Source: Fonticula alba ATCC 38817 (taxonomy: Eukaryota; Protista; Nucleariida). Taken from it: a stretch of 50,598 nt of DNA. Both the position numbers and the translations under genes were made by a program. Below, piece after piece: positions 11,601-46,266 of this stretch. The stretch lies in assembly GCA_000388065.2 (NCBI GenBank), contig KB932204.1. One strand, written 5' to 3'. The notes beneath the pieces are model-generated. The model was not told the DNA's origin, searched no databases, and saw nothing but the letters and a program-made list of their open reading frames with translations. Position 1 is the first letter of the stretch. The number at the start of each line of letters is the position of its first letter.

Positions 11601-14190
11601 ATGGCCATCCTGGCGTTTCTTTTTGGACTGCTGATCGGCCTCGCTGCCTTGCCGGCCGGCCTGGCCTTGCTGGTGCAGCGGTCCTACTCGGAGAAGGAGA
11701 ACCGACGCCATCTGCGTGCGGAGCGCCGGCGCCGGCGGGCGGTGGTTGAGTCACGTCGAGCACGGCTCCTGGCCCGTGCGGCAACTTCGCCCGAGGCGTT
11801 GGCCGCCGCGGCCGACGGCAGCCCTTACTTGCTGGATCTGGCACTGGACCCGGAGGCCGACCAGGCGGCCGGGGCCCAGGCGGACCTGGGCAACCTGGAC
11901 GTCGACTCGGACATCGAGGATGGACCGGGTCCCGGTGCACGGAGCCTGCTTGGCCGGCCGGCCGGCGGCCCGGCCGAAGCACTTGACGACATGTTCGCCG
12001 ACTATGTGGATCTCGATGAGATCGCCCCGCTGGGCGACCCGCGGGAGCTCATGCGCCGACAGGTTCGCTCGCAGCGCCTGACCGAATGGCCAACCGGGGC
12101 CCGGGAGTCCATCATCGCCATGCTCCCGGCCCCCGGCGGGTACGATTACACGGAGGCCGACTTTGCCCTGCACCCGGGCGCCCCGCTGCCGAAGGGGGCC
12201 GAGCCATGCCGCTGGCTGAATGTGGCCCTGGCGCGGTTGTTCTTCTCCATGCGCACGTCGCCGCTGCTGAAGAACAAGATTCGCCGCAAGTTCGAGGAGA
12301 AGGTCCTGCCGAAGCTGGTGAACCAGTCGATCATTGTACGTCCGCCCCTTGCCGTGGATCGCGCCGGCTTGCTTTTGCCCCCCCCCCTTTGCCTCCCTCC
12401 GCCGGGCCCCATGGCCGCGGATGGCTCCCTTCTTCTTTTTTCTTTTTTCCTCGGCCCCCTCCCGCCGGCCACTCACATCTCGGTCCCCGCCCCGGCGGGG
12501 CATGTGCCCTGGGCCAGAAATCGGTCGAACTGTCACACCTCTTCCTCGGTGACACACCGCCGACGGTCCTCTGGGCGCGCATCCTTCCGTACAGCCCCTC
12601 GGCCAAGCACAACCACCAGGTTGTCCCGGTGGAGGTGGACCTGGCTCTGTGCTATGCCGGCGGGCCCGTTGGCGGCCAGGCGTCCAGCATCGGCGGGACC
12701 CTGGTGGTCGAGGCGTCGGTCGGCGGGGTGAGTCTCACGGCCCCGGTGTCGGTGTCCCTGCGCCGGCTGGAGGGCATCCTCCGGCTGCGCCTGCCGCACC
12801 CGGAGAACCTGTCCGAAATGGACATTGCCTTTGTCCGGCCGCCGGTTCTCGATTTGCAAGTGTCCTCGAATTTGATCCTCTTCCGGTCGCAGGTGGACCG
12901 CTTCCTGGCCAAGAAACTGGCATCCATCCTGCGCGAGCTGCTGGCCCTGCCCCAGCGCCGGCCGGTGGACCTTCCCCTGGTATCCTTCCCCTCGAAGCAT
13001 CCCCTGTGCGAGTGCGACCTGCCGGCTTTGGTGGCCGAGGCCCTGCTCAATCCCCTGTCCGGGTACCTGCTGGGACAGGGCAGTGCCGGTGGCAGTGCCG
13101 GGCATGGCGGCCTGTCCGGGGGCCTTTCGGGGGCGGCCGGCGCCGGGGGCCGGGCCGACGCGCGCATGCACCATCCGCTTCCGGGCCGGCGGTTCCGCTC
13201 GGACCCGCATGCGCGTGAAACCCAGCTCCGCATTCGCTTCCCCCTGGGCTTCCAACTGGCTGCCATGCCGGCCGCGCCGGCTCCCCTGACCGGGGCCGAC
13301 TTTTCGGTGTTGGCGGATTTGGTTTCCTCCCTGGCTTATGCCACCCTGGAGGTGCTTCACTCGCCCTCGAGCTCCACCAGCCTGGGATCTCTGCGGCTTC
13401 GGGCCCTGGCCGGTGATGATGGCGAGGCGACGCCCCTCGGGGCCGGGACCATGGCCGGTGGCGGCCCCTCTGCCGGGGGTCCGGCCACTGCTGGCATGCC
13501 GAGCCCCGGAGGGTCGTCTCATCCCGCCGACACCGGGTCATCCAGTGCGGCCTCCTCGACCACCGGATCGCCCTCCATCCATGGGGGGACCGGTGTCAGC
13601 GGCTCGACAGGGCCCGGGCCCGTGGCGGCCGGGTCCGGCGCCGCGGCCACCCTCGGCCAGGGCCCCGCACCGTCGGCGGCCGCCCGCACAGCTGCCATTG
13701 CCTGGACCAGCATCAGCGAGAAGCATGGCGCGGCGGTCTTCGAGAAGCGCAAGCCCCAGAAACCCGGCGAGCCCAGTCTCTATCGGATTCGGGCGCGAGT
13801 GGCCTGCTCTCCGGCGGCCATGGAGCGTGTTCTCCGGCAGAATGACTCCATGCACATCGCCAGCCTGGAGGCCTCCTTCCGCCAGGCGCCGGTCTTGCGC
13901 ACGGTCCTCCCCGGGGCCGGGCTTTCGGACGCCGCGGCCGGCTTCCTCCGGCGCGTGGAAGACCTGGGCGTGGAGCGGGTGAGCCTGCGGGAGTTGCACT
14001 TTGGGTCCATTCGCCGGCGCACGGCCGGCGGGGCTGGCAACTCGTCTTCCGGCTCGTCCGGCTCCGAGGCCAAGTCCGAGTCCAAGTCCCATTCGGCCGG
14101 GGCCATGCTCTCGCCCCTGACACCGGCCACCGGGACACTGGGCTCGAGCGCCGGGACCGGTGCCGGGACCGGCACAGACACCCCGCCGTC

Positions 14191-14222
<32 letters not shown>

Positions 14223-14803
14223 ACCAAGAGCAGCCGCTGAATGTCTGGCAGGTGCTCGAGGTCCATGGCACGGACCCGGCCAGTGGGTCCTTCTTCTCTA
14301 CCATGCGCTCGGTCACCTTTGCCCCGAGCCAGGGGACCGCGGCCGAGGCCCCTTCCGGTGGCTTGGCCGGCGGCATGGCCGAGGATGGCGAACCCGGGCC
14401 CGGTGGCTTCATCACCGGTGACTCGGGTGCCAGCCTCACGCGCGATTCGTCCAGCCTGGCGTCGGCGGCCACGCACTTTGCCGAAGACATCGCCTCGTCG
14501 GCATCCTCGGTGGTGGCTTCGGTCATGGGCCAGGCGGGATCCACCTCCGGGGGGTTGCTCTCCTCGTCGGCCTCGTCAGTCACCCAGGCCCTGAAGCACG
14601 CCCAGACCACTCGCCGGCCACTGGTGTACCTGTGCTCCTTCTTCATCAGCCCGGTTCCTGGTCACCCAGACGTGGCCGAGTTCACCTGGGTATCGCAACT
14701 CGGTTCGTGACAGGGGGGCAATCTGGGCTCGCCCTCCAGGCATCTACTTTGCCCTTTCCCTTTTGCCCTCCTGGCTGACATGCGTCCCTCTCCCTTTCTC
14801 CCT

Positions 14804-14834
<31 letters not shown>

Positions 14835-17057
14835 CACCTGCACCGCACACAGAGGGTGAGACGCGCGCGCTGCTTCACCCGAATCTCGCGCGCGTGGAGC
14901 GCCTGAAAACCCTCTTCGAGCGGCTTGGTTCCCCCCTGTGCGTGCTTCCTTGCTCCCATCCCCCCTTTCGGCCTATTCCCAGGTGCTTGGTCTAACCCCA
15001 TCCTCCACCGGCCCCCTTTTGGTTTCCTTCCCTTTCTCCTGCCGGCGCATAGGGTCCTTTATCCCTCGCCCTCCATCCAGAGCGGGCCCCTGCTGCTGCC
15101 GATCGAGGAGGTGTCCGTTTTGCTTCCGACACTCTCGCACTCGGGCACCGGCCTGCCGGTCCTGTCGCGGTCGGCGGCCGCCACGCCGGCCGGCCTTCGT
15201 GAAGACGGCGACACACAGGGCGATGGGGATGGACGTGGGCGTTCCCGGTCGCCGGCCGATGTCGGGCTCCTGCGGTCTGGCCGGCCGATCTCCGCGTCCA
15301 TCAGCAGCTCCATTTCTCTGGACCACCTGGCCGACCTGAGTGGGCCTCCCTCGCCCTTGGAAGCGCCGGGCTCGGCGCCGGCCGCCACTCATAGCCGGCT
15401 TTCCTCCCCGGCGGCGCCCTTCGGCGGGCATGGGGAATTCCTGACGGTGCCCGGTGCTGGGCCCCCCTCTGCCGGGACCGGGACCATGTCCACCAGCCAG
15501 TCGTATGACGATTTCCGCCAATTGCATCAGCAGCTGACCGGGTCCTCGGTCGGGGGCGATGCCACCGCCAGCGGCGCTGCGACAGGCAGCCCCGCCCGTT
15601 CGGCGGACACCGAGGCCGCCTCTGCTCGGTCGCTGGTCATGACCCCGGCAGCGCACGCGGCCCTGGTACGGCGGGCCCTCATGTCGCCATATATCCTCCG
15701 GCGGCCGTGGCGCATTGTCGACAAGACCACCATTCGCCAGCTGTCGGACACGCTGCTGCGCACGGCCCTGGCCTGCGAGGCGGCCTTTTCCCTGCCGCTG
15801 GTGAGCGATCCCTTTGACTCGGGGCTGCTGCCAACGTCCGGCTCTTCCGGCGAGGGCGCCGCCTCCGGCAAGGTCCGAAAGCTGCTCTTCCATCCACCGC
15901 TCATGGTGGCCTATGTGGATGTGGCCGAGCCGCCGGATGTGGTGTTCCGCACCTTGACCATGCCCTCGGCCCGGCGGGTGGTCCAGCCCGGCCTGCAGTC
16001 CATCAACACGCTGGCTCTGCTCAGTTTGAAGGGCACGTCGCCCTCGGGAGCCGGGTCTCCGCCGGGGGGGTCGTCGCCCGGGCCGCTGTCCCCGCGCGAG
16101 GGGCCGGCTGACGGATCGGCCGATGCCATGGACCATCTGTCGGTTTTCAGCTCCCACCGGACCATGGCCGTGCGGAGCTACAGCTACAAAGGCGAATGGC
16201 GCCTGCCCAAACGCGAGGCCTTCCTGCTGGATGTGTGCCAGCCGATTGCCGGGGTCCGGCCGGGGGCGACGGTCGCCACCACCGCGGCCGCCACCGCCGC
16301 GGCCCCGGCTGCTGGGGGTGGCGGCGGTGTGGCCGCCGCCCCGGCGGCCGGCTCCGCGCATGCCACCTCGGCAGCCGGGCCGGCGGCCACCCCCGGGAGT
16401 TACATCGCCGCGCAAATGTCCATCCTGCCGGATGGGTTCTCGGCCGGGGCCTACTTCGGCAAGGACAGCCAAATGCTGCTGAATGTGCCCCTTTCGGCGT
16501 TCATTGCGCGGTCTCCCTCGCCGGCCACCCTGGCGGCGGTGTCCCTGCCAGCGGATGACCATGCATCGGAGGCAGGCTCGGCCGCCGGGGCAGCCGGCTC
16601 GGCATCCTCGTCTGCCGGTGGGGGTGGCACCTCGGCCGGCGCGGCTGGCGCCACGTCAAGCTCGGCCACGCCGGCCGTCGGGTCGACCGGGGCTGCCACC
16701 CCCTCGCCGGCTCTGGGCGGCGCGAGCCCGGCCGTCTTGGGCCAGGCATCGCCCTCGGTGGGGTCGGTGGCCATTGGCTCCGGCTCCGCCGGCATGCCGT
16801 CCAACTCGAGTGGCGGATCTATGCAGGCCGGATCCACCGTTCAGGGGTCCGGCGTGGCGGGACCCGACGTGTCGGACGGCCAGGCATGCGACGCAAGCCG
16901 GCGCCACGCCCTGGCGGCCCAAGTGACACGTCTCTTCTTTGTGGCCATCGTCAACCCGGTGCAGGACCCGGCCCAATTGTCGCTCTTGTCGTTGCATGCG
17001 TCCGACCTGCCGAAGCATGTGGGCGAGCTGGTGGCATCCTCCTCCACCGCTACCACC

Positions 17058-17089
<32 letters not shown>

Positions 17090-19453
17090 GGCCGGGGGGC
17101 TCTCCAGTTCGAGCCCCATCTCGGTGCCGGGCTCCGGAGTCACGGCCAGCGGGACCATCACGCCGTCGGCCGGGGTGTCGGCCGCGTCGCCGTCCGGGTC
17201 CTTGAGCACGGGCGCCGGTGGGTCTGGCGCTGGCGCCGGCACCAGCACGGCGCCCGTGGCCCCGGCCGTCGGCCGCGTGGACTCGTCACTGGTGGCCCGG
17301 GTGTCCAACTCCTGGATCCGACAGTTGGAGATGACGGCCTTGCAGGCGCGCCGGCTGCGGCCGATGACCTCGCGCTTGGCCGGGCAGCTGGACCAGCTGG
17401 CCGTGGCCGAGAGCTCCCGCGCGCATGATGGTTCGGTCATCAAGTCGCCGAAGCCGATCGAGGTGTCGAAGTTTTCGTCGGACATGTCGGCCGAGCCGAC
17501 ACGCCGATTGCTGGGCATGGCCCCGGGCGGTGGGCCCGGTGTCCCGGGGCTCGGGGGCGATGCGCTGCTTTCCGGCGGCGATCGTCCGGCCGGGGGGCTG
17601 CTGCGTGCTCCGGAAGACCGGACCCGTGGGCGATCCCCTTCGCGAGGCCGGTCCCCGGGTCCATCCGGGGTGGCGGTGAGCTCGCCGCCGGCCCCGGCCC
17701 TCGGGTCCGGCATGGAGGCATGTAGCTCCATCGACTTTTCCGAGGCCCTCAGCTCGGATGACATTTCCAAGGTGACCATTCGCAATGGGTCGGCTTTCCA
17801 GGCGGTTCTGCCGGTGACGCTGGACCTCCCGGCCCCTGGCGGCTGTGCCTCGGCGGCGCAGCTTCCCCTGGACCATGCGTCCAGTGTGCAGCTCCTGCTG
17901 GACTGGACCCCGGCACGCGATGGCACCCCCCCGGCCGACCTGCCACCCGGGTCAGGGGATGTCCTGCTGGCCGCACGACCGGCCCTCGAGGCGGCCCGGT
18001 GCCTGATGACCAGCGAGGCAGGCGCCGGTACTGGGGCCGGCGCCGGTGCCGGCGGCGAGGCCGCCCGGCCGACCACCATGACCACCCCCCCGGCGACCAG
18101 CCCCTATCCCGAGTCGAATCCGCGCTTCCAGCTGCGCTTCAACTTCACCCAGGGCTCGGCGTCGAGTCATGAAATCCAATTCGCCGTGTACTTCGTGCCG
18201 GCTTCCACCACCAGCAGCATCTTCGATCGGGGGGTCTTGCCGGTCCAGTGTGATAGCTGCTTGGAATTCTCGCCCCCCCTGTCGAGCTTGCCGCTGGCCC
18301 CGGGGGTCGGGTCCATGGCCACGACCCCGGCCCAGGACCGGGCACATTGCCGGACGTGTGCCCACCTGTCGGAGTTGATTGCCGCCCGCTCGCGCTTGGC
18401 CACGGCCGAATCCACCTTCCTGACAACCGGGCCCTTTGACTGGTCATCACGCTGCCCGCCCTTGCATGCGGCCTTCTTGAATTTGCAGCGCATCGAGCAG
18501 CTCCTGCCGGCGGCCCTGTGGCCCACGTTGCCGGCGGCCCTCCGGCCGACCACTCCTTCGTACTTGTCGCCGGCCACGGCCGGAGCCGAGCCGGGGCTCC
18601 TGGCAGACTTGTCGGCCGGGCCCCCGACGACCCTCAGCACGAGCGGCGGCACCATTTCCAAGTCTCGATCGCTGACCCGGCGCCTGTTGCAATCGTCCCA
18701 CCACCGGTCCAGCTCGGCTAGCACATCGGCCTCTTCCTCTTCTTCCAGCCTGGCCAGCAGCTCCAGCAGCCTGGCCTCGAGCTTGCGCCTGGGCCGGCGG
18801 TCTCGGCGTAATGGGGCCGATGCGGATTCGCAGCAATCGTCCCTTTCGGCGGCCACCACCCCGGCCGAGGAAGATGGCTCCGGGTCGGAAACGCCGGCCA
18901 GTGGTGATGAGTGTCCCGGGGTTCTCCCTCCGCCGGGGCATTCGTCCTCCTCCTCGCTGCGCCTGGTGTCGGATCTGTCCATGCCGCTGGCCTCCGACCT
19001 GTCAGAGGTGTCCTCGCCGGATGGCGCGGCGGCCACCATAGCCGGGGGGTGGCATTCCGGCGACCCGGGAACCTGGCTGGCTGGGTCAGTTCTCCGACAA
19101 TCCGGCGACTTGCAGCGCCTCCGGGCGCCTGGGGCCTTGGCGGCGGATGCCATTCCGTCGGCCATGTCCGGCACCACGGTTCCCATGGTCCCGGGGCACT
19201 GGCAATTGGTGGTCCCCTGGCAGACATGCCCCTCGGTTGGTGTGCCGATCTCCGGGCAGGTGGATTTGCCGATCGATCTGCACAATGCCAGCTCCCCGGC
19301 CTCGGGGACCATGCTCGGGCAGGTGGTCCTTGTGTGGGACAATTCGCATGCGCGGCTGACGGAAAAGAGCGTCAGCTTCTCGGCCAGCGTGGTGCGGTTC
19401 TTCGGCGAGCGGCCATGCATGGGCCCGGGCTCGGCCGAGCCTCCGGCCGTGCC

Positions 19454-19487
<34 letters not shown>

Positions 19488-20807
19488 GCCTCGGCAGCAG
19501 TGGCCTATCGAACGGTGCCACGCTCGGTGCTGGCTCGTACCCGGCCAGGGCCTTTGTCCCTCCCCCCGCGGCAGTACTTCTCCGGCGCCCTGGTCATCGG
19601 CCGGCGAGACCAATGCTCCGTGTCTCTGCCGGTGGTTCTCAGCTTGCCGGGGCTCCTCGGGCCGGAGGGCTTCGGCAGCCGGTGGCACCTGCGCCGGCAC
19701 CGAGTGGCCTGGGAATTCCGCTCCGATGGGGACATCGCCTTTTCGGTGGACTTCCTGCCGCGGGCGTGCGTGTCCGGTCGGGCGACCATCGCCGGGTCGG
19801 ATGGCCGTGCCTCGGGACCCCCTTCGCCAGATGCTTCGGGGGTCGGGGACATGGCGGATGCCTCGGCCACCGTGACCCAGTCGGTGCACTTGCCCCTGGG
19901 CCTAACTCGAACCGGGCTACATATGGCCGGTGTGCCGGTGTCGCTGCCCGATGCCGGGATCGAAGGCGCCCATCGGGGCGATGTGGCCACGGCCGCTGCT
20001 GCAGCCGGCACAATGGCCGCCGGGCCGCCGAGTGCCGCGGGCACTGGCGCCACCACCACCACCACCACCGGTCCGGCCACGAGCCCGGTCTCGGGCGGGG
20101 CATCCTCTCCGGCCAGTGTGTTTGAGGTTCCTGCTGGTGTCCCGGTCCCGGAGGCGCTCCTGCGCCATGCCTCGGAGCTGGTGGCCCACGGACGCCAGGG
20201 ATTCTTCACGGCCGGGGACCTGGCCCGGCCGGTGGCCACCGCCAACATGACCACCACTGCGCCCACCATGCCCAGCACCGGGGGTGTATATCATGCAGGC
20301 GATCTGCCGCCGCACTCCACCTCCGAGGGGGGCAGTGGCTCGGGCTCGAGCTCGGGCTCGGGTCCCGGCGCCACGGCGGCCACTACCACCACCACCACCA
20401 CCACCACCACCCCTGTCCCTGGCACCACGCCCAGCTGCCCGGTTGGACCGCACCCGTTGGCCCCCTGCCCGTTGACACTGCCGGTGGCTTTGACCCGGCA
20501 ATCCCTGCCGCCGATGAGTCTCAGCCGGGAAAGCCGCATCGCCACCTCGGATGGGACAATCTCCGGCAGCTACGACCTAGATCTGTCGCAATTGCTGCTG
20601 GTTGGCCCGCCGGCGGCGCTGGTTACCTCGGCGTCGCGCGGTGCCGGCATCCCGGCCCCGGTGTCGCCGGTGTGGTTTGCCGATCAGGACGTCTTCCTCG
20701 GGCGGGTGGTGCTCACTTGGAACAACCAGAGTGGGCGCGTGTTCTCGCGGAAGATCACGTACCACGTCTCGTGCCAGACATTGATCGACTCGTCGCGTGA
20801 TGTGTGA
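11601..20807 (+). CDS. Giant lipid-transfer / membrane-contact protein: N-terminal TM, SMP, START, START, GOLD, GOLD (~2,919 aa)
   Basis: Exons 11601-12335, 12518-14702, 14853-14937 and 15053-20807 join in frame (8,760 nt) with GT-AG sites. Hydrophobic N-terminus MAILAFLFGLLIGLAALPAGLALLV. SMP hallmark AEPCRWLNVALARLF...KSVELSHLFLGDTPPTV...LRRLEGILRLRL...MDIAFVRPPVLDLQV. Two START-like and two GOLD-like motif sets (see findings). Confidence 0.85.
14195..14221 (+). repeat. (CAG)8CAA poly-Gln tract in the lipid-transfer protein
   Basis: Encodes Q9. Confidence 0.9.
19455..19484 (+). repeat. (CAG)10 poly-Gln tract between the two GOLD domains
   Basis: Encodes Q10. Confidence 0.9.
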
Positions 20808-40040: not shown

Positions 40041-41176
40041 TGGCGTGCATGCGGACGGAAGGGGGGAGCAGTGGGTGCGGGCGCGCATGCACGCGCTCGC
40101 GCTGTGTCATGTGCACAGGCAGCGGCGGAGGAATTGCGCGCGCATATGTGTGACCTGTGTGTTGTGCGGGGGCGCGATCGTGCACGAGGAGGCCTAAAGG
40201 AAGAGCAGGGTCCAGACAAGCATGTGTTGCCCCTTTGCTTTTCTCTTTCACGTGCTCTTTCCCTCCCTCTCTCTCTCTCTCTCTCTCTCNNNNNNNNNNN
40301 NNNNNNNNNNNNNNNNNNNNNNNNNNNNNNNNNNNNNNNNNNNNNNNNNNNNNNNNNNNNNNNNNNNNNNNNNNNNNNNNNNNNNNNNNNNNNNNNNNNN
40401 NNNNNNNNNNNNNNNNNNNNNNNNNNNNNNNNNNNNNNNNNNNNNNNNNNNNNNNNNNNNNNNNGGGGGGGGGGGGCATCTCTGGGCCGTTCCCCTCTCA
40501 TGGCCTTCTCCTTTCTCGATGGCGCGTTGTCCCAACGCCAATTGGTCATCTGCCTGGGAGCAGTCCCCCCTCTTTGCCTTCTTGAGCATGCGAAAGATGC
40601 ATGCGTTGGGAGGGCCATTTCGCACCATCATGCTCCCCTCTGCGGCACTGTCCCCTCCGTCAGGCCTTTGGTGACAGGGCCACCTTGGTATGTTCGATAA
40701 TCCCCCCCCCCCCTCCCTCCCCCCCGGGCATCGTTTCAGATGAACCCCGAAGGGGCCACGCCGCAGGGGAATATGACAGGGGCTGTTTCTTTGGCAGCGG
40801 GCGGCGCGAAGGGACGCTGCTAGCTCTGGTCTCTTGTGTCGCCTGGATTCTGGACCGCGGCCTGCACTTTCCCCTCTCTATCATCCCGAGCGATGATGGA
40901 GTCCCACCGATCAAAATGAAAAGCACTGGGCGGATCGGCAAAGATGTCCATGTGAAAGTGTTGATGTATTTGGACACACACACACACACACAGACACGGC
41001 CGTGTGTCGCCGTGCTGGTGGAGGAGGGGGAGGAGGGGGGAAGGGGACCTCTTGCCGCGCCAGGCAGCCGAAGGACCCAGGGAGGGGCGCGGGGGAGAAA
41101 AAGCGAAGACCCGAGAAGAGGAGGGGCTCCTGGTGAGGTGGAGGAGACTCGACCGGGGGGGGGGGGGGGGGGAGAC

Positions 41177-42286
41177 TTACTCCTCGTAGACGTCGAGCTT
41201 CCAGAAGTTCTTGGGCTCAACAACGCGCAGGTTGGTGGAGCCAAGAGTGGCGATGGACTGCATGTGCTTCTCGGTCAGCTCGAAGTCGAAGACCTTGAAG
41301 TTCTCGACGATGCGCTCCCTGGGGGTAAGAGCGAAGGAGGGGGGGTGGGGGGGTGGGGAGAGGGAACGTCAGCACTTGCTGGGACACATGGGGAGGGCCA
41401 GCCAGCTCTGGCCAAATGCATGTAAAGACACCTCCCCCCGCCAGGCATGTGTAAGGGGACGCACTCCTTGACAGACTTGGGGATGACAACGGTCTGGCGC
41501 TGGATGGCCCAGCGAATGAGAATCTGGGCGGGGGTGCGCTTGAGCTCCTCGGCGATCTCGAGGATGACCGGCTCCTTGAGGGGGGCCTTCTCGTTGCCGG
41601 AGCCGAGGGGAGAGTAGGCGGTGACCTGGTGCATGGGAGAAGGAGGGGGAGGATGGTGTCAGACACATTGGCGAGGCACGGGCACAAGGGGGAAGGCCGA
41701 GGGAGATAAATGGCGCGCCCGGGCGGCACACACGCACCTGGATGGAGTTCTGCAGGCAGTACTGGACCAGCTCCTCCTGAGGCAGGTACGGGTGAAGCTC
41801 GATCTGCAGGTTGGCCGGCTTGATGCGAGCCTCGGCCATGAGGGCCTTCATGCGGCGCAGGTTGAAGTTGCTGACACCGATGTGGCTGACATGGCCGTTG
41901 TCGACGAGCTTCTCCATCTCGCGCCAGGTGGCCAGGATGGACTCATCGGAGGCCAGGGCCTGGTTGACGTTGCCAGCCTCGGCGGTCACCGGCCAGTGGA
42001 TGAGATACAGGTCGAGCTTCTTGAGCTGCAGGTCGGCCAGGGTCTTCAGGCAGGCGGCCTCCACGCGGGAGGGGTCGTGCTCGGTGTTCCACAGCTTCGA
42101 GGTGATGAAGACCTCCTCGCGCTTGACCTCGCCAGTGGCGAAGGCCTTGGTCAGGGCGTCACCGACCTCCTTCTCGTTCTGGTCTGTGAGGCGTTGAGGT
42201 GCGGTGTGTGTGTGTGTGTGAGTGTGTGTGGGGAAGGGGAAGGGGGGAGGTGGAGAAGGGTCGGCCAATTCCCCGGGTGGGGATCG

Positions 42287-42332
<46 letters not shown>

Positions 42333-42554
42333 GTGGATGTGGCCGCGACAGGCGAGGGGGGTGACAGAGGGGGGGGGGGACGCACAGATGGCGGCGCAGT
42401 CGATGTGGCGGTAGCCGCCCTTGGTGAGGGCGTAGAAGACGGCATTGCCAACCTCGTTGACCTTGGACTGCCAGGTGCCCAGGCCGACGGAGGGCATGCG
42501 CAGGGTGGAACCGGCAAGGGTGATGAGGTGGGTGGTGGACGCGGGCTTGAACAT
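41177..42554 (-). CDS. Aldo-keto reductase (AKR1A/GCY1-like), multi-exon
   Basis: MPSVGLGTW / GYRHIDCAAIYQNEKEVG / FITSKLW / DLYLIHWP / IGVSNF / QIELHPY / AYSPLGS / VIPKS. The D-Y-K-H tetrad is intact, with the Tyr codon split by an intron. Confidence 0.95.
42290..42334. repeat. (GT/CA)n microsatellite in AKR intron 1, one of many CA/CT microsatellites in the window
   Basis: Direct reading. Similar tracts occur near 11520-11580, 21525-21550, 22058-22083 and 47402-47432. Confidence 0.9.
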
Positions 42555-44064
42555 TGTCGGGAAGGAGAGGGAGAAAAGGGGGCGGAGCAGGCGACAGGAA
42601 GAAATCCGGAGTGTGCTGGCTAGCGATTTGCTGGGGCCGAGCTGGCCGAGGGTCGGGGGGCTTTTATATCCGGGGCTCTGGGGGGGTGGGGGGGTGGACT
42701 CTCACATCTCCGGACCGATGGGGGCATACTCTCCCTTCGTCTTTGAGGGGGGGAGGGGGGGGGATGTGGGTTTGACGCTCGCCCCACTCTCGCCCCCCCC
42801 CCCCCCCCCCCCCTCTGGGGCTGTGTTGCTCTCGGGCCGGCGTCTAAGACCAGGCCTCCGGGCCGATCCTGTCCGCCCGGCCACTTCTCTCGAGAATGAT
42901 CGCTGGGCGTTTCGGTTGGCGGCCCCCCCTTCCCCAGGCAGATCGCCAACACCGGGACACCGGTCCGCGCGCCCGGCCTTCCGCGGGTTGACCCGGGGGC
43001 GCATCGTCGCACAGGGGCGGATGGATGGGAGGACCCGTCTCCCCGCCGCGGTGACCGGGGTCGGTGAGAGCCTGGGAGGTGCCAGCTGCCGGCGCCGGCT
43101 GTCGATCCCCTTCCGCCCGCACCCCGGGCTCCGCCAGGCAAGGGGCCCTGGGGCATTCGAGGCCAGATGTCTCCCCTGGAGGCGAGGGGCGGGGGGGGGG
43201 GGGGGCGGCGACACATGAAACAGGCAGCCCTCACTTTGCCTCTCTGTCACGACGAAAATGGGCCGGGGGCCGGTTTCCCTCGGCCCCGGGCCAGCGCGCC
43301 GGAGTCCCGCCAGCGGGGGCGCCCGGAGGCGGGGGCCGGCCGGGCCGCCCCGAGCGCCGTGTGCAATCAGCCCGTACACATTGCGCCAGGCGCTCTGCGG
43401 ACTAGACTAAATAATTGGTAGCTTGCTAAGCAGGGGGGGAGAAGTAAATAAAGGATTGAATAAGCTCGCGCGGCTTTGGCCAGAGGCCCAGGGCCGGGAC
43501 CGCTCCTCCCGGGCTGGCTCGGGCGTACTCCCGCGGGGGGTGGGGGGGGGGGGGGGCGGACGCCCGCCCAGTGGTCGAATATCAGTCAGTGACTTCTCCC
43601 GTCCGCGGGTCCTCCGAGAGGCGGGCAGGCGCGCCGTCTCCGGGCTGAATGTCGCCAGGCATGCCAGGCCCCGGAAGAAGGGGGCCTCTCGGTCTAAAAA
43701 AGACTATTATTACTCGAAAAAGGGGGGGGGGGGGGGGGAAAAACGTCCTTGCCCTCTTCCCCCTCGCGTCGCGTGCGAGGCGGCGGCATCATCGTGAGTT
43801 CCCTGCCCCCTTCCTGCTCCGAGAGCGTCGGTACGGGACTTGCTTTGGCCGGCGACAAGCACCAGCGGCCAGGGTGGGGGACAGGGGGGACGGGAGTTCA
43901 CAGGGCATGCGAGAGTGTTTTTCAAACGAGGCACCCCGTCCCTGTCGCGGAAAAGCGGCGCCAAGCGGTGGCACTTCAAGTTTTTTTGAGACGCCTGGCA
44001 GTGTAGGGGACTTTGGCCGGTGATTTGTCAGCAGCCGAAGGCGCGCCACCGGCGCATGGATATC

Positions 44065-44363
44065 AGATGAGAGTGGCCCGGCTACCGGCCACACGCCGAG
44101 GGTGCGTGATCCCGCGAGTGTTCGCCTCGCCCATTTAGGACCAGCCTCGGGCCGCCCTTTGGCCCGTCAGCCCCCGCCGCCTGGCCCCTGCTGCTCGGCT
44201 CGCGAGATCGGAAGAGCGTCGTGAGATGAGAGTGGCCCGGCTACCGGCCACACGCCGAGGGTGCGTGATCCCGCGAGTGTTCGCCTCGCCCATTTAGGAC
44301 CAGCCTCGGGCCGCCCTTTGGCCCGTCAGCCCCCGCCGCCTGGCCCCTGCTGCTCGGCTCGCG
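44065..44363. repeat. 140-bp perfect direct repeat separated by an Illumina adapter (artefact)
   Basis: 44065-44204 is identical to 44224-44363. Confidence 0.9.
44205..44223 (+). other. Illumina adapter contamination AGATCGGAAGAGCGTCGTG
   Basis: Exact 19-nt match to the start of the standard Illumina read-through adapter (AGATCGGAAGAGCGTCGTGTAGGGAAAG...). Confidence 0.95.
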
Positions 44364-45028
44364 GCCCGACCTCGGCGCCGGATGACCCGCTCGCCCTGGC
44401 GAGCACTATTGGCACTTTCGCCGGGTCATGTTTGCCGCCGGCGCGGGGACGAAGACCAAGTGTGCCCGGGCCTGGCTCGGGGGGGGCGAACGCCCGGCCC
44501 CGCGACATGCACTCAGTCTGCGCCGCGGCGCGAGGGGACACATGGCTCTGTTAGCACATCGCACCCGGAGGCTGCCCCCCCGCGGGCCGGCCCCCCCCCC
44601 CCCCCCCCCCCCAGGGCAGGGTGCAGGGCACCGGGAGCCTGCCCCTTGATACGCGCTGGTATTCGGGCGACCAGAGGCGGCAAGGGGGGAGGGGGCGGGG
44701 GGCAGACAGCCCGCTCAGGCAGGGGGGACCTGGCCCCTACGCCCCCCCTCCCCAGCCCCAGTCCCCCTTTCGCTGGGCCTCGATCGGGACACATCAAGTC
44801 CCAATTTCCCATCACCAGACTGGCAAAAAAGGCCGAGGGCGCGGCCCCGCCTGGAGGGGGCGGGGAGCCGAGCAGTATGGCCCGGGGGATCCCTCGGTTT
44901 AAAAGGGATCGCAGTTCGGGCATCAGCCAGGGCGCTGCGTGGCACCGTACTTTCTCCTCGCCCCCCCCCCCATCCCCCTGGTTCCGAGCTATCTAGTGCC
45001 TTCCTCGCTTTCGTTTCCCTCTGCCAAC

Positions 45029-45463
45029 ATGGTCATGCGTTATCGCCTTGTCGCCGATGCCGCGGCTCGCTTTGCCGACAGCGGCCGGGTCTTCCACGGC
45101 GGTGCCGTTGAGCTGGTGCACCTCTCCATGCGCGAGGCCTCGCTCCCGACATATCCCACGGCCACGGATATCCTGCACGCGTACAACACCCTGCCTGATG
45201 CGTCGCATTTGCGCGCCGGCGACTTTGTCGGCTGGCTGCCGGGCACGCGCGACGCATCCAGTACCGATGACTCGGAGATCCCCCTGTCCATCGATGTCCC
45301 GGAGCATGGCGGTCGTGATGGGCATGTTGCCATCTACGTCGGCCGGTCTGAGGACGAAGTTTTCGTCGACTGCCCGTACCCCGGGGCGCCAGCCCGCTGG
45401 GTCAAGTCCTACGCCACTCCTGTGCGGATTGTCCGCCCGCACCAGCTGAACTTTGACCTGTAA
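45029..45463 (+). CDS. Intronless 144-aa NlpC/P60 (peptidase C40 fold)-like protein, catalytic Cys apparently absent
   Basis: HLRAGDFVGW (cf. L.PGDLVFF), GHVAIYVG (cf. GHVGIYVG), VFVDCPYPGAPARW (cf. MI[HDE]AP.PG..VR), terminal RIVRP. ATG lies in CCAACATGG context after a pyrimidine tract. Confidence 0.7.
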   Translation: MVMRYRLVADAAARFADSGRVFHGGAVELVHLSMREASLPTYPTATDILHAYNTLPDASHLRAGDFVGWLPGTRDASSTDDSEIPLSIDVPEHGGRDGHVAIYVGRSEDEVFVDCPYPGAPARWVKSYATPVRIVRPHQLNFDL

Positions 45464-46266
45464 TCTCCGCCGGTTAGCTTGTGGTGGTGGAGGAGGGGGC
45501 GGCGTGAGTGACGCGTGCAAGCTCCCCCCCCCCCCCCCCCCCCCCCCCCCNNNNNNNNNNCCCCCCCCCCCCCCCCTTCCCCCGCTTCTCTCTCTCTCTC
45601 TCCCTCTCTCTCTCCCTCTTTCCTTCCTACTATCCACTTGAGCCCATGGTTCGTAGCTCACGCCCTGCCCCCAGTTTTCGGCGTGCGTGCGTGGAGGAAC
45701 GGCACCGTCGGCTGCGTGGCACACACGCTCACCCATCCTTCCCACCGTCTGATCGGACCTGCCACCAGGTCTTGGGATGTGTGTGTGTGTATTTGATCCA
45801 TGTTATCGATACACCAAATAGATGCCTCTCGCCTGTCCCTTTTCTCCTGAATTTGCGTTGCCCCTGTCGCGCATTGCCACCTTTGGTCGAGAGAGATACG
45901 TGTGCATGTGTGTGTGTGTGTGTGAGTAAACGGAGGAGAGGCGGCGGGGGACAGCAGTGTGGCCGTCTAACGAACTGCTCCGGTGCTGCCAATTTTTTCC
46001 CCTCCCCCGCTGGTGGGGAAGGCAGGAGCGAGGGGGGCGGGTTCTTTTTTTTTTTTTGTCGAAACAGGGGCAGATGCCACGGTGGGTGTGATAGATCGTT
46101 CTGTCCCTTTTGGCCGCTTGCCCATTTGCCCCACTCGCCCCCTGGTGCAGCAGGCGCGCGCGGACATGCAAGAGCACACACACGCAGCGAAAGTGCACAC
46201 AGAATGCAACTCCTCCGAAAAAGGGAAAGGCACGCTGGTGAATCAGCCATCCCTGACATGTGCCTA

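Follow-up and report, generated by a model that had tools for sequence, protein, structure and literature searches.

An expressed gene of the amoeba Fonticula alba encodes a protein with a predicted NlpC/P60-type fold and alanine at the position of the nucleophile cysteine

The amoeba Fonticula alba, a bacterivorous and aggregative species that is sister to Fungi, has a genuine and moderately expressed gene for a protein of 144 residues that is predicted to adopt a papain-like fold of the NlpC/P60 type. The alignments support a reading of its catalytic triad positions as Ala-His-Asp, in which the nucleophile is gone and the histidine and the aspartate are kept. The gene lies in a stretch of 50,598 nucleotides (hereafter, the window), for which an original prediction made from the letters alone had proposed an intronless NlpC/P60 gene with a catalytic loss. 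The motifs quoted there (LRAGDFVGW, GHVAIYVG, FVDCPYPG and GAVELV) and the single cysteine of the protein (C115) are all found in the 144-aa translation. The features used in this work are given below in window coordinates; P0002 is a metagenomic homologue and MepS is the Escherichia coli endopeptidase, both described further on.

41155-42582, minus strand: aldo-keto reductase (AKR) gene, with introns at 41318-41463, 41624-41735 and 42184-42385, all GT..AG and confirmed by RNA contigs
44988-45500, plus strand: transcript contigs of the 144-aa gene (minimum mRNA), from samples X1 and X2, colinear with the genome
45029-45463, plus strand: single-exon coding sequence of the protein with a predicted NlpC/P60 fold and without the nucleophile Cys (translation, called gene in GCA_000388065.2, alignment with P0002, fold matches)
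45104-45106, plus strand: codon GCC of Ala26, at the catalytic-Cys position (Cys in P0002; MepS Cys94 by hhalign)
45236-45319, plus strand: acidic insertion, residues 70-97, lineage-specific (gap in P0002 and MepS; pLDDT <50; present in the mRNA)
45323-45325, plus strand: codon CAT of His99, the catalytic-position His in the GHVAIY strand (invariant with P0002; MepS His145 by hhalign)
45368-45373, plus strand: codons GAC TGC of Asp114 and Cys115, the probable third-triad position and the only Cys (MAFFT; C115 invariant with P0002)

The open reading frame at 45029-45463 (plus strand) encodes 144 amino acids followed by a stop, and the public protein collection records its product a single time, from contig KB932204.1 (3.07 Mb) of the F. 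alba ATCC 38817 assembly GCA_000388065.2. Past the upstream stop, the earliest in-frame ATG is the one at 45029; the open frame starts with a GTG at 44939, and the 5' leader covered by RNA (44988-45028) has no ATG. The N-terminus is an amphipathic helix within the fold (helix H3-18 of the AlphaFold2 model). A signal peptide at this end was ruled out by low hydropathy: no stretch of the 144-aa protein resembles the hydrophobic part of a signal peptide, the top 15-residue Kyte-Doolittle mean being 0.71, which bears out the original prediction on this point. Since the protein lacks a signal and consists of a free-standing domain, it is presumably cytosolic. It contains no repeats, and the search for paralogues suggested at the outset found none within the 50,598-nt window.

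Four genes are called within 10 kb, encoding a WW-MyTH4-RhoGAP protein, the AKR, a protein kinase and an APP1-type phosphatase, and all four have introns, since their genomic spans exceed what their products need. The AKR gene and the 144-aa gene are both held in a gap-free sequence (40465-45550), which is followed by an N gap at 45551-45560, 90 nt downstream of the 144-aa gene, in a poly-C run before the kinase (MAPK) gene. The gene has a GC content of 0.65 and a coding-like pattern of GC1/GC2/GC3 (0.70/0.49/0.77), its GC3 of 0.77 being close to that of long host exons at 12020-20804 (0.78-0.81), with 0.92 for the highly expressed AKR gene. This host-like codon composition argues for a long residence in the host. 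Homopolymer tracts of C or G of 12-27 nt are frequent between genes: there are more than 50 in the window (e.g., 44591-44612, 45524-45550, 45561-45576 and 42793-42813), and many assembly N gaps, including the one downstream of the 144-aa gene, directly adjoin such a tract. The region between the AKR gene and the 144-aa gene also contains a direct repeat of 140 nt, 100% identical (44065-44204 and 44224-44363, 159-nt spacing), which lies about 0.7 kb upstream of the 144-aa gene, has no RNA cover in X1 or X2, and reflects a recent duplication in tandem or else an artefact of the assembly.

Four sequencing runs were aligned to the N-free stretch 41000-45520. Two of them, X1 and X2, are two samples of one study from 2012 whose library type is unrecorded, and their status as RNA was judged from splicing: the contigs over the AKR gene jump at 41317/41464, 41623/41736 and 42183/42386, thus skipping three introns whose CT..AC ends correspond to GT..AG on the minus strand. 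The spliced AKR frame encodes 305 aa with a GC3 of 0.92 and an RNA depth of about 900-1200, which makes it a very highly expressed gene. Over the 144-aa gene, X1 gives a single contig (44998-45498, depth 68) that matches the genome without any difference, and X2 also gives a single contig (44988-45500, depth 76). The depth is about one-tenth that of the AKR gene and drops to zero between the genes, in the bins 44624-44925 and 42963-44472. Because these contigs run colinear with the genome, the gene is transcribed and unspliced, and it is therefore intronless as predicted. They show no joint, no loose end and no attached upstream exon, which leaves no spliced-in source for a cysteine motif; a lack of expression, raised as a possible refutation, is likewise contradicted by the depths of 68-76. 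The contigs are strandless, and the transcript was assigned to the plus strand because a homologue exists for the plus frame only. Their ends fall at the flanking poly-C tracts, which may set them, and the true mRNA ends may differ. More generally, RNA contigs break at homopolymer tracts, which creates false joints between tracts.

The two other runs, X12 and X13, are RNA runs from 2026 with the same species label, and gave no sequence from this organism over 41000-45520. Their reads match homopolymers (poly-C/G) and a short low-complexity stretch (43717-44223), with unrelated loose ends, and we rejected them as expression evidence for this reason. As to contamination of the assembly, a concern voiced in the original prediction, it is ruled out because gap-free sequence joins the 144-aa gene to the spliced AKR gene of the host; the host-like composition agrees with this.

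The sequence of the protein has almost no detectable relatives. A Pfam scan identified no family even at E-values up to 10, and searches of NCBIfam and of the PDB sequences (phmmer and profile) gave no match; the rows for Opticin (E 0.18) and AvrSr27 (E 1.4) are chance matches. When 1.84 billion cluster representatives were searched exhaustively with phmmer, the protein itself and a sole other match, P0002 (E 3.7e-4), were retrieved. The collection covers EukProt and yielded no eukaryotic homologue. P0002, a singleton of 122 aa, comes from the JGI metagenome sample 3300059473. It aligns end to end with the Fonticula protein (BLASTP E 1e-13, 135 columns, 27-33% identity), and the two have in common the blocks DAA..FAD.G.VF..G, TA.DI, GD..GW, R.GHV.I..G, V.CP..G, KS and RP.

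P0002 leads toward known families. The NlpC/P60 model of Pfam (PF00877) has no match in the 144-aa protein and scores 13.1 bits in P0002, for a gathering cutoff of 23. The Pfam matches of P0002 are weak but in register (CHAP, E 0.025; NLPC_P60, E 0.097, residues 32-90 on profile positions 16-75), and its neighbours in the ESM feature search are CHAP or NlpC/P60 clusters of phages and bacteria. P0002 has the triad Cys-His-Asn and lacks both a signal peptide and the 28-aa insertion of the Fonticula protein. Its gene lies on a contig of 4,135 bp, 380 nt downstream of a same-strand gene that runs off the contig after more than 1,041 aa, an arrangement that would fit a phage tail or a secretion-system effector locus. 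Additional searches did not enlarge the set. In a word-index protein search, the Fonticula protein and P0002 each retrieve themselves alone. Across 185,579 genomes of bacteria and archaea, the JGI metagenome contigs and IMG/VR, P0002 and the two-sequence profile gave pattern matches and no confirmed relative, and tblastn found no relative in GenBank phages and PLSDB plasmids, where the only match, to Synechococcus phage S-SCSM1 (E 0.2), was rejected as not significant. The Fonticula protein and P0002 define a very small NlpC/P60-like family that escapes Pfam and NCBIfam.

The assignment to NlpC/P60 comes from predicted structures. The ESM Atlas model of the Fonticula protein has a pTM of 0.74 and its structural neighbours are NlpC/P60 clusters (TM 0.64-0.67). 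AlphaFold2, run on the two-sequence alignment, produced a folded structure in one of five models (pTM 0.66, mean pLDDT 61), and an atlas structure search with this model agrees on the fold, with neighbours that are all bacterial or phage. The 50 best matches of a Foldseek search of the PDB with the AlphaFold2 model are cell-wall hydrolases of the NlpC/P60 superfamily (best E 6.9e-4), nearly all of them canonical; Tse1 and a small number of phage lysins of the CHAP type appear at low ranks. VIA-align, which is independent of Foldseek, was run against 48,161 representative chains. Its ranks 1-25 are all canonical NlpC/P60 proteins (Z 8.6-11.4), with 102-118 residues aligned at an rmsd mostly of 2.7-3.6 Å and up to 4.6 Å, and the top matches are NlpC B3 and NlpC1 of Trichomonas vaginalis. 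Below them come CHAP (Z 8.0) and then the type VI secretion amidases Tae3 and Tse1 (7.7-7.9), with transglutaminase and other papain-like folds at Z <7. The AlphaFold2 model of P0002 has low confidence (pLDDT 53), and NlpC/P60 is still found first, weakly (E 0.03 and worse). The two predicted models of the Fonticula protein thus agree with the fold named in the original prediction, on an AlphaFold2 model of moderate confidence and for a protein that matches no family HMM.

The loss of the nucleophile was read from two alignments. At the start of the model helix H25-36, the Fonticula protein has G-G-A-V-E-L-V where P0002 has N-G-C-S-Q-M-V. The alignment of the pair to MepS, whose sequence was taken from the E. 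coli genome NC_000913.3, starts at A26 on Cys94 and places H99 on His145 (hhalign, E 1.8e-4, probability 49%); these MepS precursor residues are the nucleophile and the general base (C68 and H119 in the mature protein). His99 is the first residue of the model strand E99-103. The placement of GAVELV on the DCSG motif, which had been done by eye, is therefore recovered by both comparisons. Since P0002 has a cysteine at the position of Ala26, the change from Cys to Ala is real with respect to this relative, and it is not a sequencing slip because GCC differs from a Cys codon at two positions and the RNA contig shows the same codon. For the third position, MAFFT puts F-V-D-C (Fonticula), Y-V-N-C (P0002) and F-V-H-A (MepS) in one column block, so that D114 pairs with His157, the third residue in MepS, after a hairpin that is three residues longer; the hhalign alignment ended before D114. 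Asp114 is thus the probable third triad residue. That the only Cys adjoins this Asp, as originally described, is correct for the position of C115, and the third-triad role of its neighbour is probable, as it comes from MAFFT.

The proposal that this cysteine could be a relocated nucleophile is weakened by the same alignment. C115 is shared by P0002, whose canonical Cys is in place, and is therefore a family feature. Moreover, its side chain should point away from the groove, opposite to that of D114, because the two residues are adjacent on a predicted β-strand (E111-114). The other peculiarity of the Fonticula protein is the 28-residue insertion between the GDFVGW strand and the His strand, which is predicted to be disordered (pLDDT <50, residues 70-97). 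These 84 nt could have been taken for an intron, an explanation ruled out by the RNA contigs that run through 45236-45319.

An origin of the gene by horizontal transfer from a bacterium or a phage is somewhat more probable than the alternative; the two known sequences allow no tree. This origin is favoured by the lack of eukaryotic relatives in a collection that includes EukProt, by the structural neighbours in the atlas search, which are all bacterial or phage, and by the fact that this short intronless gene stands among intron-bearing ones, although intronlessness weighs little in a gene of 435 nt. The collections searched contained no relative from bacteria, archaea, viruses, phages or plasmids that could indicate the donor lineage. 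The proposed history would start with the entry of the gene into the Fonticula lineage from a bacterium or a phage, after which it would have taken on the composition of the host. The ancestor would have been a Cys-His-polar hydrolase, and P0002 still has Cys-His-Asn. In the Fonticula lineage, the nucleophile Cys would have become Ala26, and the groove of the former active site would have gained an acidic disordered loop at its side.

What the protein does was considered from its predicted structure and its ancestry. With the thiol absent, the covalent thioester (acyl-enzyme) chemistry of these enzymes should be impossible, and the protein would therefore be a pseudoenzyme. The conserved groove might then bind a peptide-like ligand without cleaving it, and by ancestry the first candidate ligand would be a stem peptide of peptidoglycan or a muropeptide, as in RipD. 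We consider that the Fonticula protein has about an even chance of being such a non-catalytic binder. Against this reading, peptidoglycan is not obviously within reach of a cytosolic protein, and the loss of the nucleophile together with the disordered insertion would also result if selection were relaxed on a transferred gene of no use. A more specific version is improbable, namely that in this phagotrophic relative of fungi a bacterial or phage cell-wall amidase gave rise to a cytosolic, catalytically dead muropeptide receptor acting as an innate-immune or prey sensor, independently of NOD, PGRP and LysM proteins. If this were so, one could speculate that the inserted acidic loop is a signalling or partner-binding element. 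This peptidoglycan-sensor reading would be striking if true, and is speculative.

The main competitor of the binder, which we regard as possible and clearly less probable, is a decaying relic: a bacterial or phage gene for a signal-less cell-wall hydrolase without a substrate in the cytosol would have come under relaxed selection, lost its Cys and gained a junk loop, and would now be transcribed but idle. The loss of the Cys is expected here because a transferred copy lacking an export signal would stay in the cytosol and meet no substrate there, and since P0002 likewise has no signal peptide, the cytosolic location could be an accident of ancestry. The protein is also an orphan with one distant relative among the 1.84 billion representatives and no paralogue, its acidic insertion of 28 residues is modelled with low confidence, and its RNA is about tenfold below that of the neighbouring AKR gene. 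However, the reading frame is unbroken and its start codon stands in a good context, the codon composition is fully that of the host, both predictors still fold the protein, and the motifs of the fold and groove (GD..GW, GHV.I..G, V.CP..G, KS and RP) have been kept at about 30% identity to P0002. We see a slight tilt toward function because of these kept motifs, the host-like codon use and the steady expression.

A role unrelated to peptidoglycan is rather unlikely. The protein would then be a cytosolic module for interactions with proteins or lipids, like other domains of the NlpC/P60 superfamily that act inside cells, and possibly akin to the C-terminal domain of AIM3/BBC1. The suggestion comes from the ESM feature search, where the nearest clusters carry PF25459 (AIM3_BBC1_C; score 0.94, 192 of 256 features), and it would suit a protein without signal peptide. 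AIM3 and BBC1 occur in Fungi, the sister group of Fonticula. Yet hmmscan gives no match to PF25459 at E = 10, provided that the model is in the Pfam copy scanned, the clusters listed with PF25459 are bacterial, the structural neighbours are peptidoglycan hydrolases throughout, and the search of 1.84 billion proteins found no eukaryotic homologue.

It is very unlikely that the protein is still an enzyme, cleaving peptides of peptidoglycan or another amide with either Cys115 or a water molecule activated by His99-Asp114 as the nucleophile. His99 and Asp114 are indeed kept, and the only Cys lies within two residues of the polar residue of the groove strand. Against this, C115 is equally present in P0002 together with the canonical Cys and so did not originate as a replacement, and its side chain and that of D114 should be on opposite sides of strand E111-114; we know of no NlpC/P60 enzyme with a nucleophile relocated in this way. 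Finally, an artefact, either bacterial contamination of the assembly or a chance open frame in GC-rich DNA, is suggested by the N gap at 45551-45560 between the gene and the MAPK gene and by the many spurious frames expected in such DNA, but is hardly credible given the gap-free sequence up to a spliced host gene, the transcript cover confined to the frame, the full-length alignment with a homologue, the coding-like GC1/GC2/GC3, and flanks with the poly-C tracts typical of the host.

Relative to canonical NlpC/P60 proteins (MEROPS C40, PF00877; e.g., the D,L-endopeptidase MepS/Spr of E. coli), the Fonticula protein shares the predicted fold (Z 9.2-11.4 over 103-118 residues) and the order of elements, i.e., the helix with the nucleophile position, the strand with GD and hydrophobic residues, the His strand and the strand of the polar residue. 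It differs from them by the Ala in place of the Cys, by the 28-aa insertion before the His strand, by the lack of a signal peptide, lipobox or cell-wall-targeting domain, and by its eukaryotic host.

RipD of Mycobacterium tuberculosis (Rv1566c; PDB 4jxb) matches the fold with Z 10.0 and also has an Ala at the Cys position. It is an exported protein with a non-catalytic, peptidoglycan-binding NlpC/P60 domain and the triad Ala-Ser-Glu (PMC12067865). The analogy drawn in the original prediction holds for the Ala and fails for the His, which RipD has lost too, whereas the Fonticula protein keeps both His and Asp. Since RipD is in addition exported, it is a loose analogue; its C-terminal pentapeptide repeats and its export have no counterpart in the Fonticula protein, and searches of the PDB sequences detected no sequence kinship between the two.

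The best structural matches are the NlpC proteins A1/A2 and B3 of Trichomonas vaginalis (8ev4 and 8ev5, Z 11.4; 6bim and 6biq, Z 11.1-11.2), which are protist copies of a bacterial cell-wall hydrolase fold, laterally acquired and with a bacterial ancestry supported by trees. These proteins keep the catalytic Cys and degrade peptidoglycan; by its title, structure 8ev5 is a covalent adduct with E64. The A-type proteins have extra N-terminal domains, while the Fonticula protein is a lone domain. The Tae/Tse1 amidase effectors of type VI secretion systems are small, single-domain, papain-like and signal-less proteins, in this respect similar to P0002, that were transferred to eukaryotes (ticks and others) as Dae. 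Dae proteins keep Cys and His and gained secretion signals. Their bacterial counterparts Tae/Tse1 match the Fonticula protein with Z 6.3-7.9, lower than NlpC/P60, and we found no sequence relation between the Fonticula protein and Tae or Dae.

Transfers of this fold to eukaryotes (NlpC/P60 in Trichomonas, Tae to Dae) and a dead NlpC/P60 binder (RipD) are thus already known. In the literature, we found no paper that links Fonticula with NlpC/P60 or describes the C-terminal domain of AIM3/BBC1 as NlpC-like. What is new is the combination of a eukaryotic host, the lack of an export signal, the loss of the nucleophile with His and Asp kept, and a family of two members that the Pfam and NCBIfam models miss. 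If the protein is a relic, it is an ordinary case of a transferred gene decaying in the wrong compartment. Should it prove functional, it would be the first cytosolic NlpC/P60-fold pseudoenzyme of a eukaryote, and would offer a handle on how a bacterivorous amoeba near the root of Fungi perceives or handles fragments of bacterial cell walls.
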